A stretch of DNA of 64,000 nt from Octopus sinensis (Eukaryota), in contig NC_042997.1 of NCBI RefSeq assembly GCF_006345805.1, positions 183,892,001-183,956,000 on the forward strand, read 5' to 3'. Position 1 is the first letter of the stretch. The number at the start of each line of letters is the position of its first letter. A model generated the notes under the pieces. The model was not told the origin of the DNA and ran no database searches. It saw only the letters and a program-made list of their open reading frames with translations. Positions 5,918 through 43,100 of this stretch are shown here, one piece after another. Both the position numbers and the translations under genes were made by a program.

Positions 5918-8900
5918 TCACTTGTCCTGCCGGGTCTTCTCGCGCACAGCACACTTCCAGAGGTCTCGGTCTCTAGTCATTTCCTCAGTGAGACCTAAAG
6001 TTCGAAGGTCGTGCTTCACCACCTCGTCCCAGGTTTTCCTGGGTCTGCCTCTTCCACAGGTTCCCTCAACCGCTAGGGTGTGGCACTTTTTCACACAACT
6101 ATCTTCATCCATTCTCGCCACATGACCATACCAGCGCAAACGTCTCTCTTGCACACCACAACTGATGCTTCTTAGGTCCAGCTTTTCTCTCAAGGTACTT
6201 ACACTCTGCCGAGTGTGAGTACCGGCATTACACATCCATCGGAGCATACTGGCTTCATTTCTAGCGAGCTTACGCATATCCTCAGCAGTCACGGCCCATG
6301 TTTCACTGCCATGTAGCATGGCTGTTCGTACACACGCATCATACAGTCTGCCTTTCACTCTGTGCGAGAGGCCTTTTGTCACCAGCAGAGGTAAGAGCTC
6401 TCTGAACTTTGCCCAAGCTATTCTTACTCTAGCAGTTACACTTTCAGCACACCCCCCCCGCTGCTGACTTGGTCACCTAGGTAACGGAAACTATCAACTA
6501 TTTCTAGTTTTTCTCCCTGGAAAGTGACGGAAGTTGGTCTCAGAGCATTTTCAGTGTTGTTGTTCCTGAGCATCTGCCACATACAAAAACCATCTTCCTA
6601 GTTAGCCTTCCTTTGACATTGCTGCATCTCTTATGTGTCCATAGCTTACACTTGGTGCATCTTATAGAGTTTCTACCTACACCTTTTCTACAGATCGAGC
6701 AGGGCCATCTACCTGAAGGTGTTTGTGATTTGTCTACCTTCCTACTGATTACGACTTTGGTTTTAGCTAGATTGACTCTGAGGCCCTTCGATTCTAATCC
6801 TTGTTTCCACACCTGAAACTTCTCCTCCAGTTCTGATAGCGACTCAGCAATTAGAGCAAGGTCATCAGCATAGAGGAGCTCCCAAGGGCATCCTGTCTTG
6901 AATTCCTCCGTTATTGCCTGGAGGACTATGATAAATAGGAGGGGGCTGAGTACTGAGCCTTGGTGGACCCCTACCTCTACCCGGAATTCTTCACTGTACT
7001 CATTTCCAACCCTCACCCTACTAGCGGCGTCCCTATACATGGCCCGCACAGCTCTCACTAACCATTCATCTATCCCTAGTTTTCTCATTGCCCACCAGAT
7101 AAGGGATCGGGGGACCCTGTCGAAGGCTTTCTCCATGTCAACAAAAGCCAGGTACAGGGGCTTATCTTTGGCTAGGTATTTCTCCTGCAGCTGCCTTACC
7201 AGGAATATAGCATCAGTAGTACTTTTCCCTGGCACAAACCCAAACTGCATCTCATCTAAACTAACTCTCTCTCTAATTAGTTGGGCTATGACCCTCTCCG
7301 TAACCTTCATCACCTGGTCCAACAGCTTGATACCTCTGTGTAGTTATTTGTATCTAGGGCATCACCTTTACCTTTGTAGCAGTTGACTATTATACTGCTA
7401 CACCAGTCATTGGGTATGACCCCTTTGTGTATCACCTGATTAACTATATGGTGACTAGGCTATAGCCGACACTACCAGACATTTTGAGCATCTCTGCAGT
7501 GATTCCTGATGGGCCTGGGGCTTTCCCTGTCTTCATGCTTCTAATTGCCTTAGCTACCACAGAACTATCAACTCGGATAGCTGGTCCCTCTGTGGGTCAA
7601 CATTCGGCAGACTCTCTTTATCCCATTCATTTTCTTCATTCAGCAACCTTTCATAGTGGCATCTCCAAACCTCTCTCTTCGCATCCTCATTTAGCGCAAG
7701 TGAACCATCTTCCATGCGAACACACTTCTCTCCTACCACATCACGATTCTCTCTCAAACACTGTCTTGCAACACGAAACACCTCCAGTCTTTGGTCCTCA
7801 CGGCGCAGAACATTGGCAAATTTTTTCTTATCTGCTTCCCCTCTGGCTAAATAAACCTGTCTCTAGCTTCTCTTTTGGCAGTCTGATACAATTCCCTGCT
7901 ACCCCCATTTTTCCAGACCTTCCAAGCCTGTCTCTTTTCTCTAATAGCCCTGTCTACAATATTGTTCCACCACCACGTTATTCTAGGTCGAGAGGGGACT
8001 TTGCACCAGCCACAGATCTGGTCAGTGGCTCTCAGCAGGTTGTCCCTTAGAAACGTCCAGCTGTCTTCTACCCCTGTGATGCTCTATCCCCTTCTACTTC
8101 GTCAGAGGCTTCAAGTAATATGTCCCTAAATCTCTGTCCATTTGCAGGATCTTTAAGCTTCCAGATCCTTCTTCTCCATATTTGTCGTCTTCTGGTTGTC
8201 CTCCTAGTCCTGATCCTAAAGTCACTAACTACCAGTCTATGTTGTGGGGTACATTCTTCACCTGGGAAGGTTTTGGCATTTATAAGCAGCCATCTCTCCC
8301 TTTGCCTTGTAAGGATGTAGTCAATTTGGCTGGTATGTTGGCCCGATTGGTAAGTGACTAGGTGGCTGGTAGGTTTCCTGAAGTTAGTGTTGCAAATCAT
8401 AAGATTATTTGCATCGCAGAACTCCAGCAGCCTGGTTCCCTCCTCGTTGCGGGAGCCATAGCCATAGCCTCCATGTACGCCATGGAAGCCCCCAGCATGT
8501 CGTCCAACGTGACCATTGAAGTCACCAGCCACAAAGATAAGGTCTCTGTCGTTCGTCAATGAGGTAGTCTGCAGTAGAGTGTCATAGAATCGGTCTTTCT
8601 GTCCATCGGGTAGCCCCGACTGAGGAGCATAGGCTGATATAATGGTTGCTAAACTATGATGAAGCACTAATCTAATCTTAAGTATTCTGTCACTTACTCT
8701 GATTACCTCAATTACTTTATCTACCCATTTCTCAGCGATAAGTATACCCACGCCACCAACCCCGTCAGTGTTCCCTGCCCAGAAAATCTTGTACCTGCGT
8801 TCCTTGCCTGTGAGGAGCCTAGCTGATCCTCCTCTCCACCTTATTTCTTGCATGCAACATATATCCACACATCTCCGTTCAAGCATCTCGACTATCTCAC

Positions 8901-9081
8901 CAGACCTACCTTTCAGAGTGCCAACGTTGAGGGTGCCAACCCTGAGGGTGTGGAAGGCATGGGCTCTAGAGACCCTGGGACGGTGGACAGTAGCTTCGTG
9001 TACCTGAAAAGAAAGCTCGCATTTGGCAGAATTCATGTGCAAGAAATGAAGTAGTAAAGTAGCCTTCAGTACAACCTGCAT
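5918..9081 (-). pseudogene. RTE ORF (endonuclease + reverse transcriptase + PHD finger) broken by a handful of small frameshifts
   Basis: ORF-track pieces 8068-9081, 7554-7781, 6540-7322 and 5918-6382 join into one RTE-type protein through small indels (near ~8070, 7615, 7450, 7345, 6555 and 6460). The catalytic YADD is intact. Confidence 0.9.
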
Positions 9082-12440: not shown

Positions 12441-12977
12441 TATTTGATCCAAGAAGCAATTAATACATCAGTTTTATCCTTTCCACTCAACAGAATACTT
12501 ATTCCATTTAACCCCCATATTCATCAATTATAGAAGCAAGATAACAGTTTATTTTAACCTTTTAGCATTCAGATTACTCTGTCAAATGTCATGCTTATTA
12601 ACATTGTTTTGAATTAATTACGCATTATGTCATAGCTTTGAGATTTCACTGATGTGATTATTTATTTTCAGAATGACATTGTAGGGTAGGTATGAGAGGC
12701 CAGATCTGGCCAGTTTCAACATAAAACAGTAAAAAAATATTGCCTGGATATGGTCGATTTAAATGCTAAGGATTAAACTCCCTTAATGTTTATGGAATGA
12801 GACGACTGGGTGCGATTGTTTGGATGCTGACAATTTGGCATGATCAACTGGACATGGAACCTGTTTTGGTGGTGGCTATTTTAGGCACTGGAGTCAAACA
12901 CAAGCTCACACCCACATGCATAGATATACATACACAGACAGAAAGTGGGAAATAGAGAGACATTACAATTTAATTCT

Positions 12978-13238
12978 TATTTCTTTATTGCCCACAATTA
13001 AGATTGCATGAAAGAACTATCGATCTGTCAATCCTACCGGTGTCCAGACCGGATGAGTTTTCCCGTGTTGTGTCAAATTAAGCCGCAGGCTCCACTCCTG
13101 GTGGGGACAAACAAGGACAGACGAAGTGATTAAGTCGATTGCATAACTGGTACTTAATTTATCGACCCTGAATTTATCGACAAAATACTGCTAAGCATTT
13201 CGCCTGGTGCGCTAACGTTTCTGCCAGCTCGCCACCTT
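12978..13238 (-). mobile_element. tRNA-SINE family A copy (rearranged) carrying an 18S rRNA insert, with an 18-bp TSD
   Basis: TSD acattacaatttaattct at 12960-12977 and 13239-13256. Head aaggtggcgagctggcagaaacgttagc and tail ttgtgggcaataaagaaataag. Confidence 0.9.
13008..13103 (-). pseudogene. ~95-nt 18S rRNA fragment (helix 30-31 region onward) embedded in a SINE
   Basis: The minus strand reads caccaggagtggagcctgcggcttaatttgacacaacacgggaaaactcatccggtctggacaccggtaggattgacagatcgatagttctttc, which matches the universally conserved eukaryotic 18S segment. Confidence 0.92.
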
Positions 13239-13791
13239 ACATTACAATTTAATTCTATTCAACCCAATTAACATAAACACCTCCCCTCTCCTCACATACA
13301 CAAAAAGGGGAGAGAGAGAGAGAGAGAGAGATGTGTTTGTAAAAAAAGGGGTCACATCATACATCTTGATGTTTTCTCTGATTTTTCTGCTTACAGTGAC
13401 AAAATTTCAATTCCTTCTCAATTCTACTTTGTCAAAGATGTACAGGAATTCACTGTGAGAAAACCACCCTTTTCTACATTTCATCTATATTTCACCAACC
13501 ATTATGTACATAAGTGTAGCAGAAAGTTAAATGAAGTTGAGTAGTTGTGGTTGCAAAATAGTTGTCAACTAGAAGAAAAACAAAATTTTCACAGTGCCAA
13601 ATGGTTCTGGGAACAAAATGTCTGAAATCAAATAAGTCAGTTTTGAATCATTAATGCCAAATAGGTAGGACCAAAACAGTTGTGTCAAAGTGTTTCCTAT
13701 CTTGATATTTAACAACTCCCATTTTTTAACAAGGAATTTTGCATTCACTTTTCCAATAATCATTGAAAATTTCACTAAATTCAGACATTAC

Positions 13792-13864: not shown

Positions 13865-14465
13865 CTGAAAAGAAAAATTGACAGTAAAAACAAACTAAAA
13901 TACATATAAATGTAAGATAGGAACATAAAGTAACAGCTATTAAAACAAAATGTTGATTTCTGATATAACACAAGACATCTGAAGAAAGCTGGAGTGCACA
14001 ACTGAAACATACTGAAAGCAAAAAATCAAGATGAGGACACCAATCTGACTAATATAAACAGTATACATACACAAAATGTGTACTAATTAAAAGAACATTT
14101 TAAACTCTTGTGTTATAATATATTTTCTGTGTTATAATATATTGACTTCAAGTGACTGCAACAAAGGTGTCTGGCATACATTGTGAGACATATCCAATTC
14201 ATGGTTATATGTGGCACTTGTGCTGGTGCCCTGTCAAAAGCACCCAGAACACACTATGGAGTGGTTGGTGTAAAGAAAGGAAAAAAACAATGCCAGAACA
14301 GACAATGTAGCCAGGTGAAGTCCCTGGACTTACCAGCTTCAGTAAAACCACCCAATCCATGCCAGCATGGAAAATAGACATTAAATGATGATGATGATGA
14401 CACCAAGATTGCAAAAATTTTCACAAGGCCATCACTTAGAAACTGAGAGAATCTTCTGAATTCTG

Positions 14466-14700: not shown

Positions 14701-14922
14701 AATCTTCTGAATTTAACACAATGTAAAATAGATTTATACTTTTTATGTCAGTAGTAGCATTCTAGAGAGTTGTAGATGTATTCTGGCAGTTGAGGACTGT
14801 GTGGGCAGGGGCTTGCAGTGGTATCAAACTGTGCCTCTGGTATGTTCAGATGATCTTAAGTAGTTTTGCTTCAAAAGAAAACAAAATGCCTTTCAGATAA
14901 TGAAGCAAAGTAAATAACTTAC

Positions 14923-15111
14923 TCTCTGTCTGACAGTTTGAATGGAGTTATGACGTTCATGCCAACTTTTTTAACAGCATCACGATTCACTAGTTTTGGA
15001 TCAAAATCCTCAACAAAGTTTGAGCGAGGTGCTATTGTAAACTCATCTTTGTGCATGAATCTTCCTTTCACTCTGATTCTGCGGTATTCAAGATTTTCAA
15101 GTTCTTCAAGA
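14923..15111 (-). CDS. SURF1: SURF1 exon 4: (D)LEELENLEYRRIRVKGRF...GMNVITPFKLSDR
   Basis: TAG acceptor and GTAAGT donor, phase 2/2. Contains the LEYR.V.V.G.F and VITPF motifs. Confidence 0.96.
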
Positions 15112-17114
15112 CTAAAAGGAAAAAAAAAAAAGAAAAATATTATAACAATGAAGTAACAAAGTGAAAAGTTAAGAGACAATAAGTAGAAAACATGGAAAAC
15201 TAAGAATTTTTAAAGTGGTAAACTGGCAAAATCATTAGCATGCCAGGCAAAATGCTTAGCGACGTTTTGTCCACCTTCACATTCTGAGTTCAAATTCTGC
15301 CAAAGTCAACTTCGCCTTTTATCCTTTTGGGGTCAATGAAGTAAGTACCAGTTGAGCACTGGGGTTGATAAAAATCAACTTAACCACTCCACTGAACTTG
15401 CTGGCCTTGTGCCAAAATTTGAAACTAATATAATTAACATGCCTCAAAGAAATGAGCTGGCAGAAACGTTAGCACGCAGGGTGAAATGCTTAGCGGTATT
15501 TTGTCTGCCACTACGTTCTGAGTTCAAATTCTGCCGAGGTCAACCTTGCCTTTCATCCTTTTGGGGTCAATTAAATAAGTACCAGTTACGCACTGGGGTC
15601 CATATAATCGACTTAAACCGTTGGTCTGTCCTTGTTTGTCCTCTCTGTGTCTAGCCCCTTGTGGGTAATAAAGAAATAGGTATTTCATCTGCCGCTATGT
15701 TCTGAGTTCAAATTCTGCCAAGGTCGACTTTGCCATTCATCCTTTCGGGGTCGATAAATTAAGTAACAGTTACGCACTGGGGTCGATGTAATCGACTTAA
15801 TCCCTTTGTCTGTTCCCTTTATGTTTAGCCCCTTGTGGGCAATAAAGAAATAAGAAGCATTAGATCATTGGATAAAATGCCTAGCAGTATTTCTACTAAC
15901 TTGTTACATTCTGAGTTCAAATTCTGTTAGGGTCAATCTTGCCTTTCATCCCTCCATGGTTGATAAAATGAAGTACCATTCAAGTAATAGGATCAACGGT
16001 AATAATTAATGCCCTCCCCTCAGAATTGCTGGCCCTAGCCAAAAATATGTGAAACCATTATCATTCTGTGCTTTTATAGGACACTTTCTCACATTAATAC
16101 ATATTGATAATACCTCAAGTATCATCACTCTCTTCCTCCTTTCAATCATTAGTACATCTGTAACACAAGCTCCATTTATCTGCTTTGATTTTGTTATTTA
16201 TTCTGTATTTTTTATGTAGTAGAAGCCAAGAAGCCAGGGTGGTGTACAGCCAGCTGAGAGGTTAGTAGTTTGTATCCAGTCACCAGCACTGGTGTGTCCA
16301 TAGACAGGGTAAATGGCCAACCAAGATGAAAATACATAATACAGAGTAGGAACAACTCTAGCACTGTTGTTGTTCTAGTAATTACGTAACCCTGGTCATA
16401 CCCTAGTCAAGCAGACTCATGCCATTTATGTAGTTAGTTGAATAGCTGTGATGTGAAATCTAACAGTCCAGAGCTTATGTATAGTTGAGGAGCATATAGG
16501 TATAGACATGGCTTTGTAGTTGAGAAGTTTGCTTTGTGAGAGAATATGGTGATGACAAGGAAATGACAACTTCTACATGTGCAAGACTAAAGAGTCCTCT
16601 CTATCTTATGCTATATCTATTTGTTGGTAACATGACTGAGAGAGTGATAAAAAGAGAGTGATGGCAGAGAGAAAACCAGAGTGATAGGAGTGAAAGGGTA
16701 ATAGAGGAATAAAAACTTTTATATGCTGGTTTTTGGTAAGGAGATTGAATAGAAAATAGCGTAAGTGGTGTGATGAAGGAAGTGAGAAGAAGAACACAGT
16801 GACAGAGGAGGGAGAACTGGAAATAAGAGAGAAAAAGCAATGGGGGATAGAGTGATGGATAGCAATAAACATGCATAATGAAAGTGAGTAAATGAGTGAT
16901 GGATGTTAATAATGGTTGATAGAGGGGGAAGTAAAGGGAGAGAGAGACAGAGTTATAGTTAGCAACAGAGTATGATGATAGCTAGAATGACACATGGAGG
17001 GTATTTTGTTGATTCTGCAGCTATCATAAATTGTCTGAAGTTTGGAGTGAGTGGAAATAGAATGTAGAGGTTAGATGTATATTTTCAGGACAAGCGTTTC
17101 TAGAATATTTTAGT

Positions 17115-17503: not shown

Positions 17504-17848
17504 TACATTTATGAACCATCACCCATCAAAGCACATGTTTCTGATTAAAGGCTGCATATAATAGCTATTACTTGTTTAAATCATCTTGTAGTAGGGTAAT
17601 TCATTATCAAGTGGATATCTTATGAAACTGCAATGGTCAAATAAAACAAAATTGCATCCAAGACCATTTTTATACTTACTCCTACCTTGTATACTCTCAA
17701 CTACACTTTTTCACTATCAGCTTCTTTGTAGTACGTATGCACTTGTCATTTCATGATGCACATCTAATCATTCATAGCAACTCATTCTTTCTTATTCTCA
17801 GTTACAAAATTAGTGAAAATGAAATGTGAAACATAAGAGCTCCCTTAC

Positions 17849-17970
17849 TCTTCGGGTAGAGAAATAGGCTCTGCCATAGTGCGATCCTCAAGCATCTTAA
17901 TCAAATCAAGTTTCCATTCTCGACGACGAACTTGCCATGTCCCAAGGCCAAAAGTTGTTATAGGGATTAT
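17849..17970 (-). CDS. SURF1: SURF1 exon 3: [40 protein letters not shown]
   Basis: CAG acceptor and GTAAGG donor. Contains the hallmark [12 protein letters not shown] motif (first TM segment). Confidence 0.97.
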
Positions 17971-40150: not shown

Positions 40151-43100
40151 CACAAACATGCATCTGCAAAGGATGTCACAAATATCTGTTTCTTTATTAC
40201 CCACAAGGGGTTAAACATAGAGGGGACAAACAAGGACAGACAAACAGATTAAGTCGATTACATCGACACCCCAGTACGAAACTGGTACTTAATTTATCGA
40301 CCCCGAAAGGATGAAAGGCAAAGTCGACCTCTGCGGAATTTGAACTCAGAACGTAACGGCAGACGAAATACGGCTACGCATTTCGCCCGGCGTGCTAACG
40401 TTTCTGCCAGCTCGCCGCCTTAGGATGTCACAAATATCTATTTCTTTACTACCCACAAGGGGCTAAACACAGAGGGGACAAACAAACGGATTAAGTCGAT
40501 TACATCGACCCCAGTGCGTAACTGGTACTTAACTTATCGACCTCGAAAGGACGAAAGGCAAAGTCGACCTCTGCAGAATTTGAACTCAGAACGTAACGGC
40601 AGACGAAATACGGCTACGCATTTCGCCCAGCGTGCTAACGTTTCTGCCAGCTCGCCGCCTTAGGATGTCACAAATATCGTCCATACGTAACAGACGAGTC
40701 AAAGATTGTCACATAGAGTTATCTCCCATAGTTAGATAACTACTGCCATCTATTGTCAATACATCATATTCGTAAACTACGGGGAACCTTGGATTCATAA
40801 TTACCATACATAAAAAAAAAAAAAATTAAGAAAAAAAAGGAATTCAGACTGAATATATCATTTCACACAGTAAACAAGAAAATGGATGAAAATCCTTATA
40901 GCTATAAACTCGATCTTTCACATCGTAGTGCTGTTGAAGAATTATTAATGGGTCATTCTTTAGTTTGTCAGTTACCGTAACCGGCCACCTTCAGAATGAT
41001 CGTAAGTATACAATTATTTATTTAATTAGTTTGTTTATTTCGATAGCTTTCAGTAATATAATAAATATCTATTCAGCATTGTTTTAATTAAAATTCTATT
41101 GCTAGTATTCAAAACACCAATAACAACAACAAGTAGAAACACAGTACGATTTATAAATAAATAAATATCTTACAAGACAGCCTTGAGAAGCATACGTTTA
41201 TTTGTATCAATTTTTACCACAGATGTTATGAGTGATGAGAAGTTAGTTGATTCAAAATATTTTTCAAGATTCTTAAAACTTTAAACAAATTACTATCTTC
41301 TAATCAATTTGAGACTGTCACCACACGCATATGTCAAATTGTTGCGGGGATTATAGCCTATTTAATTAAACATTAACAGATTATTTGCCGTCGTTTATTC
41401 AAACGCAGCAGTCAGATGTTAAAGTCAGTGTATTTTAATGTTTGCTGAAATGAATAACATATCTAAGTGCAACAGAGTTTCATGTACACACCAAGCTTAT
41501 TTTTTTCTGTTTTCATAAGTGACTGAAGGGATATCAGAATACACAGATCAACGTTGTACATTAATTTTAATGGGCAGCTGTTTTTACTTATGGTATTTTT
41601 ATTATTTACTCCCAGAATTGTATGCTGTTATTTCTGATCACTGGTTACTATATATGACGTGTATACAACATAAAATTTCAGCGATTATTTATAAGGTTTT
41701 GAGAAAATACCTTTGCTATCCGAAATAAAAATTTACATAATCGGACATGTTATGGATATTGTGTAGTTGCGATATACATCACAATTGAAATTCGTAAGTA
41801 ACAGTTCTATTTCAGTTCAGGTTAAGGAGGTCTGTTATTTAGTTATATTAGTTTGATATTCAAAATATTAACTCTTGGAGTGACGAGTGCTGGAGGATTG
41901 AAAGCAAACTCCTACCGATCTGAGAATGTGACCTGGTTTCGTTTCGCAGTTGTAACATTTAGCTTTTATTTTGCTGAAGAAATGCACGGACATCCCACAC
42001 TCTCGTTCCCCTTCTCTACAAATGTGTGGTAGTGTGCTAAAACAAGAAATCAACATTAGCTTTTGGATGAGTCATTAGTAATGGCATTGGTATCGATAAC
42101 GGGTAAGTCTACACTTTGCCATCTTTGAAAGATTTGGATTTAAACGTATAGTATCTGCAAAAAGGCCCGTGTAAACTTGCAGTATGTTTAACTTTAAAAA
42201 ATTATTCAGAATGATGGTCTGTACACAAAGATGTTTTAACTTGCTTTCGTAATATTTTTCTGATGAAATAACGGTTCTTTTACTTGTTTCAGTCATTTGA
42301 CTGTGGCCGTGCTGGAGCACCGCCTTTAGTAGAGAAATCGACCCCAGGACTTATTCTTTGTAAACCTAGTACTTATTCTATCGGTCTCTTTTGCCAAACC
42401 GTTAAGTTACAGGGACGTAAACACACCAGCATCGGTTGTCAAGCGATGTTGGGGGACAAATAAAGACACACACACACATATATATACGATGAGCTTCTTT
42501 TTAAGTTTCCGTCTACCAAACACACTCACAAGGCTTTAGTCGGCCCGAGGCTATAGTAGAAGACACTTGCCCAAGGTGCCACGCAGTGGGACTGAACCTT
42601 GTACCATGTGGTTGGTAAGCAAGCTACTTACCACACAGCCACTCCTGCACCTAAAAGTCCACTCATATATCTGTCAATGGAGTGGGTATATTATCCGACC
42701 CCTAGTGCGAAACTGATTGGTAAAATTAGCCGCGATGGATATATAATACTGAACACTTCGGATAATATATATATATTTATCCTTGATGGATGTGAAACTC
42801 AGGGTAACCTCATAGACCAGCCATAACTATATCTAATTACTCTGCTGCTCTATAACTTATAGTGTGCTTCCCTTTCAGACTTATGATTTACTGACGATTA
42901 TATATATTGTTTCAGTCATTAAACTGCAGCACCACTTTGAAAGAATTTTAGTCAAAGGAATTGATCCCAGTACTTTTTTTTTTATATCTAAGCTTGGTAC
43001 TTATTCTATTAGTTACTTTTGCTGAACTGCTAATTTATGAGTTTGTAAATATACCAACACCGGTTGTCAAGTAGTGATGCGGGACAAAGATACACACATG

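Follow-up and report, generated by a model that had tools for sequence, protein, structure and literature searches.

A SINE/18S rRNA chimera in a SURF1 intron of Octopus sinensis and its possible relation to a modified nucleotide of ribosomal RNA

Background

The reverse transcriptase of long interspersed nuclear elements (LINEs) can switch between templates, an activity that yields chimeras of ribosomal RNA (rRNA) and LINE sequences as well as composite short interspersed nuclear elements (SINEs) (10.1101/2025.02.02.635956, PMC4824008, PMC4758252). Bipartite and tripartite chimeras of the types U6/L1, 5S/L1 and 28S rRNA/L1 appear in the account of Buzdin et al. 2003 that is given in PMC4824008 and in 10.1101/2025.02.02.635956. 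Additionally, SINE families with rRNA-derived modules are cited in PMC4758252, namely SINE3, which is derived from 5S rRNA, and SINE28, which is derived from the 3' end of 28S rRNA. Here we describe a chimera of a tRNA-derived SINE and 18S rRNA that resides in an intron of the SURF1 gene of Octopus sinensis, within a stretch of 64,000 nucleotides (NCBI RefSeq assembly GCF_006345805.1, contig NC_042997.1, positions 183,892,001 to 183,956,000 of the forward strand) that is referred to in its full length as the window and whose first letter is position 1. An initial sequence-only reading of the window had proposed that a reverse transcriptase switched from the SINE RNA to mature 18S rRNA and back, and that it misread a modified base on the way.

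The modified base is a uridine of 18S rRNA that is converted to 1-methyl-3-(3-amino-3-carboxypropyl)pseudouridine (m1acp3-pseudouridine). The modification is conserved across eukaryotes and blocks Watson-Crick pairing; Tsr3 attaches its acp3 group at a late stage and in the cytoplasm, so that only mature 18S rRNA would carry the block. It is established that this nucleotide causes strong misincorporation and stalling of reverse transcriptases to a degree that depends on the enzyme: the corresponding signature has been described (10.1101/840132), a group II intron reverse transcriptase gave 21% mismatch whereas none was seen by Sanger sequencing with the Moloney murine leukaemia virus (MMLV) enzyme (PMC8336963), and MarathonRT gave more than 50% mismatch in Mn2+ (PMC10245971). 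A "modification fossil" in retrocopies was not found in the literature searched, which does not prove that none has been published.

Structure of the chimeric SINE copy

The element occupies positions 13238..12978 on the minus strand of the window, measures 261 nt and belongs to an abundant tRNA-derived family of octopus SINEs, designated family A. It is enclosed by a target-site duplication (TSD) of 18 bp with the plus-strand sequence acattacaatttaattct, one copy of which is located at 12960..12977 on the 3' side of the element, where it abuts the SINE tail, and the other at 13239..13256 on the 5' side. Both copies are identical at 18/18 bp and lie flush with the SINE head (AAGGTGGCGAG..., from 13238) and with the SINE tail (...AAAGAAATA, to 12978).

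Five parts can be distinguished on the minus strand. The tRNA-related head with the A-box side (AAGGTGGCGAGCTGGCAGAAACGTTAGC...GTATTTTGTC) covers 13179..13238 and corresponds to nt 1-60 of the SINE consensus. The body (GATAAATTCAGGGTCGATAAATTAAG...CTTGTTTGTCCCC) at 13103..13178 shows in the consensus alignment a B-box deletion with a 6-nt duplication as well as a 14-nt deletion. It is followed by a piece of 93 nt at 13010..13102 that is derived from nt 1726-1818 of the 2645-nt 18S rRNA gene, belongs to the h31-h34 region and is in sense orientation with the SINE. The adjoining 12-nt filler ATGCAATCTTAA at 12998..13009 matches neither 18S rRNA nor the sequence that is usual for the SINE at this place, and the 3' tail TTGTGGGCAATAAAGAAATA at 12978..12997 aligns with the tails of other SINE copies of the window. 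The parts stem from different RNAs, share one orientation and are surrounded by a single TSD, and the inner 18S piece has neither a TSD nor a tail of its own.

Six other copies of the same SINE are present in the window (at ~14466, 15454 and 39412, and on the minus strand at 40421, 40661 and 43833), and head, body and tail of the chimera are colinear with them and with the family consensus. The head is 85-88% identical to the heads of the other window copies and deviates from the consensus chiefly by CpG transitions, and the tail has the same sequence as the tail variant seen in the copy at ~15833-15852. According to the alignment with the six copies, 105 foreign nucleotides, comprising the 93 nt of 18S rRNA and the 12-nt filler, stand in for the 15-nt segment TCTGTGTTTAGCCCC.

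At the SINE/18S junction, the CC at 13103-13104 constitutes a microhomology of 2 nt with 18S nt 1724-1725. The filler has the 8-mer ATGCAATC in common with the body of the element itself, where the 8-mer spans the junction of the 14-nt deletion (p ~0.02 for a random 12-mer); judged from this match, the filler looks as if it had been copied from ATGCAATC(GAC)TTAA, located ~90 nt upstream in the same element. The loss in the B-box region is due to a deletion of 54 nt that removed GAGTTCAAATTCC with respect to the SINE consensus and whose junction carries the local 6-nt duplication, GTC/GATAAA/TTCAGGGTCGATAAATT. The 14-nt deletion is separate (CAGTT/ATGCAATCGAC); deletions of this type recur in ~49 other SINE copies, and this one may already have been present in the source RNA. 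No tRNA was called by ARAGORN in the window. The chimeric copy is a defective member of its family that lacks the B box and is not a source gene for RNA polymerase III (Pol III).

The SINE part contains ~12 mismatches in 150 nt, five of which are CpG transitions, and the 18S part 4 in 93 nt, values that are compatible with one age. An approximate count by eye gave decay at 7-8 of 13 CpGs in the SINE part and at one of six in the 18S part, numbers that are too small to separate ages.

The family also shows rearrangements elsewhere in the window. A SINE dimer is located at 15454-15852 on the plus strand, in which the tail of a full copy runs into a second copy that starts with GTATTTC (consensus nt ~50). 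In the chimera, the 54-nt deletion sets in slightly further along, after GTATTTTGTC (~nt 60), and the region of consensus nt ~50-60 may be a favoured place for jumps of the reverse transcriptase. Two tandem SINE copies at 40170-40677 on the minus strand each follow an identical ATATTTGTGACATCCT flank, indicating that the SINE was duplicated along with this flank.

Comparison of the insert with the 18S rRNA of the same genome

The reference 18S rRNA gene was taken from a complete 18S-5.8S-28S unit of the same genome (L040:4258-6902, 2645 nt). The insert is 95.8% identical to it over 95 nt, which include the two nucleotides of the CC microhomology (E = 1.8e-46), and the Rfam model SSU_rRNA_eukarya matches it on the minus strand of the window; an Rfam scan of the whole window at the gathering threshold found nothing. 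Four mismatches are present in the 93 nt, namely a T>A change at 13071 and C>T changes at 13053, 13046 and 13016, which lie at +18, +25 and +55 relative to the T>A site, with that at +25 being in a CpG. The A at 13071 aligns with 18S nt 1757, the U of the conserved loop GAC-U-CAACACGGG, which is the equivalent of the m1acp3-pseudouridine site (human 18S:1248). It results from a transversion at a universally conserved base outside a CpG. The C>U change at +18 (nt 1775) would leave this position of the helix in the Rfam consensus paired, as G-U, and could therefore be a former rRNA polymorphism.

The proposal of a co-oriented SINE/18S chimera within one 18-bp TSD in a SURF1 intron is borne out by the perfect TSD, by the Rfam match, by the alignment with the species' own 18S rRNA and by the SURF1 exons described below. 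Several details of the sequence-only reading have to be revised. The 18S origin of the stretch given as 13103-13008 holds but not its bounds, since the true stretch is 13102..13010 and the filler (13009..12998) is not 18S. The single mismatch is correct for 13103-13059, where only the A at 13071 deviates from the genome's own 18S, but four are found in the whole piece, and the ~70 nt described as missing around the B box are in fact divided between the 54-nt and the 14-nt deletion.

Occurrence of the chimera in the genome

The genome sequence (2.72 Gb in 13,516 contigs, with 30 large scaffolds) was searched for the characteristic junctions. Both SINE/18S junctions occur exactly once when up to three mismatches are allowed, the B-box deletion junction GTATTTTGTCGATAAATTCAGGGTCGATAAATTAAG also occurs once, and among 40 scored 18S-like hits the 3' chimeric junction is covered by the window alone. 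The unique junctions indicate a single event and not an 18S-bearing SINE family, and a copy whose B box is gone could not have founded a family. The view that the chimera belongs to an 18S-containing SINE subfamily with a transmissible rRNA module, an alternative that had been considered from the outset and for which the 5S- and 28S-derived SINE modules mentioned in PMC4758252 provide precedents, was thus rejected as very improbable. An assembly or read artefact is an equally remote explanation, as the two SINE halves of the 261-bp element stay in register with a perfect TSD outside and the 18S piece is 4% diverged from the ribosomal DNA (rDNA), which speaks against a fresh rRNA or rDNA read.

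The base at the modified site across the genome

A 31-mer with N at the modified site was used to search the whole genome with at most three mismatches and detected 28 matches. Every 18S copy in an intact-looking rDNA unit contains T at nt 1757, and the possibility that the octopus's own 18S carries the A was therefore dismissed. A base other than T was found in the window insert (A), in a fragment at C24:21400865 (A) and in a degenerate rDNA unit of C10717/C10971 (G). The combination A1757/T1775 was detected in no copy of the assembly other than the window insert and the C24 fragment. For a tally by lineage, 13 independent degenerate 18S lineages were compared over 95 positions; three of them are mismatched at nt 1757, the mean being 0.66 per position (Poisson p ~0.03 for a site chosen a priori). 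This census was made exclusive of the fragments at C20:21942546, C5:133789074, C11057:28565, C1:51503958, C8695:295888, C16:32547304 and C18:5706997.

The C24 fragment (L028; C24:21400621-21400895, minus strand) consists of an (AT)n tract, 18S nt 1745-2012, ~45 nt of other sequence and a full SINE copy that ends in a (GAT)n tail and belongs to a different abundant family. The 18S segment is thus placed ~45 nt upstream of an intact SINE 5' end with all parts in one orientation, which is the classic bipartite layout of a template switch; a recognisable TSD was not found around it. It shares with the window insert the T>A change at nt 1757. The boundaries of the two 18S pieces (1726-1818 and 1745-2012), their flanks and their chromosomes are different, and since neither piece contains the other, they are not DNA duplicates.

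Another short piece, L051:1507-1561 (C4:88583636 onwards), is an 18S-derived filler of 55 nt in a (TA)n tract. It joins nt 1758-1784, in sense orientation, to nt 1786-1813 in reverse complement, and the arrangement resembles filler of break repair in which an inversion took place at CCGG palindromes. One end coincides with the nucleotide just 3' of the modified site and is ambiguous because of the TATATA flank, so that the filler either stops beside the site or includes an A at the site. A fragment at L021:1487-1682 (C28:10474613-10474808) contains 181 nt of 18S (~nt 1716-1896) without a SINE and without a tail; it is flanked by the 15-bp TSD TTTAACCAACTGACA and, given this TSD, is probably RNA-derived. 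This fragment has T at the modified site, as have the isolated fragments L041, L046 and L048. A match at C4:21347824 was considered as a third fragment with T at +18 and set aside as probable chance, as it comprises only 22 nt with two mismatches before the homology stops, and ~0.7 matches of this type are expected by chance, by our estimate, in the 5.4 Gb of both strands.

The genome contains further sequences related to rDNA. On C10717 and C10971 (L022-L024, L049, L050) repeated degenerate rDNA-like units were found, with 18S identities of ~87-91% and deletions and an external transcribed spacer (ETS) identity of ~70%; they read GAC-G-CC-ACACGGG, with T>G at the site and A>C two bases on, and may be pseudogene arrays of the host or stem from a different organism. 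The sequences at C1618:7189, C7755:241186, C8702:408823 and C9496:179639 form one older 18S-like lineage characterised by a common CAACGCAGAAAAAC, with T at the site. Units and pieces of rDNA (L031-L047) are scattered over C1, C2, C3, C7, C8, C11, C17, C18, C19, C25, C30 and small contigs and show 91-100% identity. Rearranged rDNA includes L025/L026/L044 with an internal 18S deletion of ~410 nt, L027 with another deletion, and L038, a mix of intergenic spacer (IGS) repeats, 18S and a piece of 28S.

Gene context of the chimera

Three exons of SURF1 (PF02104) were detected by Pfam searches of six-frame translations in which stops were read as Gly. All are on the minus strand and are located at ~17845-17967 (profile positions 2-43), 14919-15101 (47-94) and 2019-2093 (176-200). 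The flanking exons place the chimera in a SURF1 intron, in sense orientation to the gene. The same intron contains on its minus strand a non-LTR (long terminal repeat) retrotransposon at ~6747-8934 with matches to endonuclease (PF03372/PF14529) and reverse transcriptase (PF00078, E = 2e-29) domains. A weak match to the Rfam C/D snoRNA family snoZ185 at 13953-14021 on the plus strand (20.5 bits, E = 0.54) is below the gathering score and probably due to chance.

Discussion

The chimera is most likely a template-jump product of a LINE reverse transcriptase that is of a known kind but has an unusual layout. It is likely, on balance, that all jumps occurred within one reverse-transcription event, and the more comprehensive view of a dead-on-arrival, single-copy chimeric retrocopy of a jumping LINE reverse transcriptase, with the A at 13071 as a misread base, is slightly to be preferred over its negation. 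Under this scenario, a LINE reverse transcriptase would have copied octopus tRNA-derived SINE RNA at a nicked target in the SURF1 intron with five or six template jumps. The 20-nt SINE tail would have been copied at the start, followed by 12 nt taken from further up a SINE RNA; the enzyme would then have jumped to 18S rRNA, reading it from nt 1818 to nt 1726, before it returned to the SINE at ...GTCCCC, 15 nt upstream of its exit point, via the 2-nt microhomology. Two further short jumps with microhomologies of 2-3 nt would have deleted the B box.

The competing explanation for the layout is a secondary insertion, in which a later double-strand break in the 3' part of a resident SINE removed 15 nt and was closed through end joining with templated filler. 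That the single TSD demonstrates a joint insertion of SINE and rRNA, as the sequence-only reading had argued, does not follow, because a resident SINE that received the 18S piece later would show this TSD just as well. Two further observations weigh against template jumping: an exit and a return that are only 15 nt apart on the same type of template are not what template switching usually yields but a typical outcome of break repair that involves a small deletion, and filler copied in cis from ~90 nt away is likewise characteristic of end joining of the polymerase theta type. The exchange of 15 nt for 105 nt with junction microhomologies of 0-2 nt has the same character. Moreover, both the C4 and the C24 piece are located in or beside (TA)n microsatellites, the former resembling repair filler with its inverted half and not a retrocopy, and polymerase theta, which produces templated insertions, is able to use RNA as a template for reverse transcription (PMC11292364, PMC8195485). 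Still, a later break is the less likely origin of the insert; the filler would in that case consist of 12 nt copied out of SINE sequence close by and of 93 nt whose source was 18S rRNA, an rRNA-derived cDNA or ectopic 18S-like DNA. The deletion with duplication at the B box is private to this copy, lies ~130 nt from the 18S insert and shows the same jump-and-recopy character, so that break repair requires a second, independent event. As a Pol III source RNA needs the B box, this rearrangement must have arisen during or after copying. The non-CpG divergence is alike in both parts, with a CpG decay that appears heavier in the SINE part by eye and on small counts, and a second, classic bipartite 18S/SINE chimera exists on C24. 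On these grounds template jumping is favoured over break repair, under which the T>A change could still be a modification trace if the polymerase had read mature rRNA.

With respect to the A at 13071, misincorporation opposite m1acp3-pseudouridine is about evenly poised between true and false; it would imply mature cytoplasmic 18S rRNA as the template. Several observations support it: the site had been specified in advance, and a mismatch at it has a low chance probability both in the insert (p ~0.04) and in the tally of lineages (p ~0.03); the rDNA units themselves have T, apart from the degenerate one; the C24 fragment, a different chimera, carries the same T>A change; and the C4 filler ends beside the site. 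The alternative, which we consider almost as credible, is that the A is no trace of a modification but a substitution after insertion, or that it was inherited from a variant or pseudogene template (A1757, T1775) that also gave rise to the C24 fragment. Several findings count in its favour and against misreading. The A is just one of four substitutions in 93 nt, and a pre-specified site is struck by one of them by chance with p ~0.04. The C>T change at +18 is also common to the window insert and the C24 fragment and occurs in no rDNA unit of the assembly; two shared derived bases suggest common descent instead of two misreadings, so that both fragments may go back to one A-bearing variant template and count as one observation. 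The degenerate C10717/C10971 unit, one of the three lineages mismatched at nt 1757, is non-T at the DNA level, and two other positions likewise reach three mismatching lineages. Finally, T is retained in L041, L046, L048 and the TSD-flanked L021. The census of dispersed 18S fragments, for which an excess of non-T bases had been predicted, is thus no more than weakly positive, with the A-bearing copies being possibly not independent.

A common variant template has its own difficulties. Apart from the two fragments, the assembly holds no A1757/T1775 copy; the fragments differ in boundaries, flanks and chromosomes and are not DNA duplicates; mature 18S rRNA would presumably be a far more abundant template than any pseudogene transcript; and both fragments show the identical transversion at a conserved non-CpG base. 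The objection from the shared +18 change is softened, as neither fragment contains the other, mature rRNA is the commonest possible template and the C>U change would keep the G-U pair and could be an rRNA polymorphism. The broader interpretation, in which a reverse transcriptase of the octopus germ line copied mature 18S rRNA at least two or three times (window, C24, C4) and the acp3 base marked each copy, leaving A twice and an end beside the site once, can be offered only tentatively and is somewhat more doubtful than misreading in the window insert alone. In sum, the switch from SINE to mature 18S rRNA and back with a misread base stands as far as the chimera is concerned, which is real and unique, and stands in the balance with regard to the misread base; the idea of a modification fossil is a good testable lead that is suggestive but not demonstrated, its prospects being about equal in both directions.

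As a locus, the chimera is a neutral intronic oddity that illustrates the number of template jumps possible within one reverse-transcription event, and its worth is that of a lead. If the A is a misread m1acp3-pseudouridine, the genome retains, in its retro-copied rRNA fragments, a record of RNA modification states, which would be testable at scale in genomes rich in such fragments: the equivalents of human 18S:1248 and of the 28S nucleotides m1A1322 and m3U4530 would each be expected to show elevated numbers of mismatches and of 5' ends at a single known base. Such marks would identify mature ribosomal RNA as the template and be relevant to the old proposal that it is at the ribosome where SINE RNAs encounter the LINE enzyme; if the marks of the octopus germ line are real, they would be evidence that reverse transcription of SINE RNAs takes place in direct contact with the ribosome.

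Comparison with known systems

The chimera resembles the products of LINE template switching in that unrelated RNA pieces are co-oriented within one TSD, the rRNA piece is internal and truncated, and the junctions show little or no homology. Unlike these products, the chimera in the window has a SINE as its carrier in place of a LINE, its rRNA part comes from 18S, whereas the rRNA partners in the 2025 survey are 5S and 28S (10.1101/2025.02.02.635956), and the rRNA piece is located in the middle of the carrier and not at its 5' end, a position that needs a jump out and back. The C24 fragment has the usual 5'-end layout. With SINE3 and SINE28 the chimera shares the joining of rRNA to SINE modules, but these families are multi-copy and use their rRNA part as promoter or tail, whereas the window contains one copy with an 18S piece of no evident role and a lost B box. 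Templated insertions at double-strand breaks (PMC11292364, PMC8195485) are similar in that a patchwork of short copied pieces, one of them from cis, takes the place of a small deletion; a second rearrangement 130 nt away is not expected for them, and the window site is free of microsatellites and other fragile motifs. With the m1acp3-pseudouridine signature of RNA-seq data the chimera has in common the affected nucleotide of the loop GAC-U-CAACACGGG and a non-reference base that appears only in the RNA-made copy. That signature, however, is a property of laboratory cDNA, whereas the insert would represent its counterpart in germ-line DNA, written by an endogenous reverse transcriptase.

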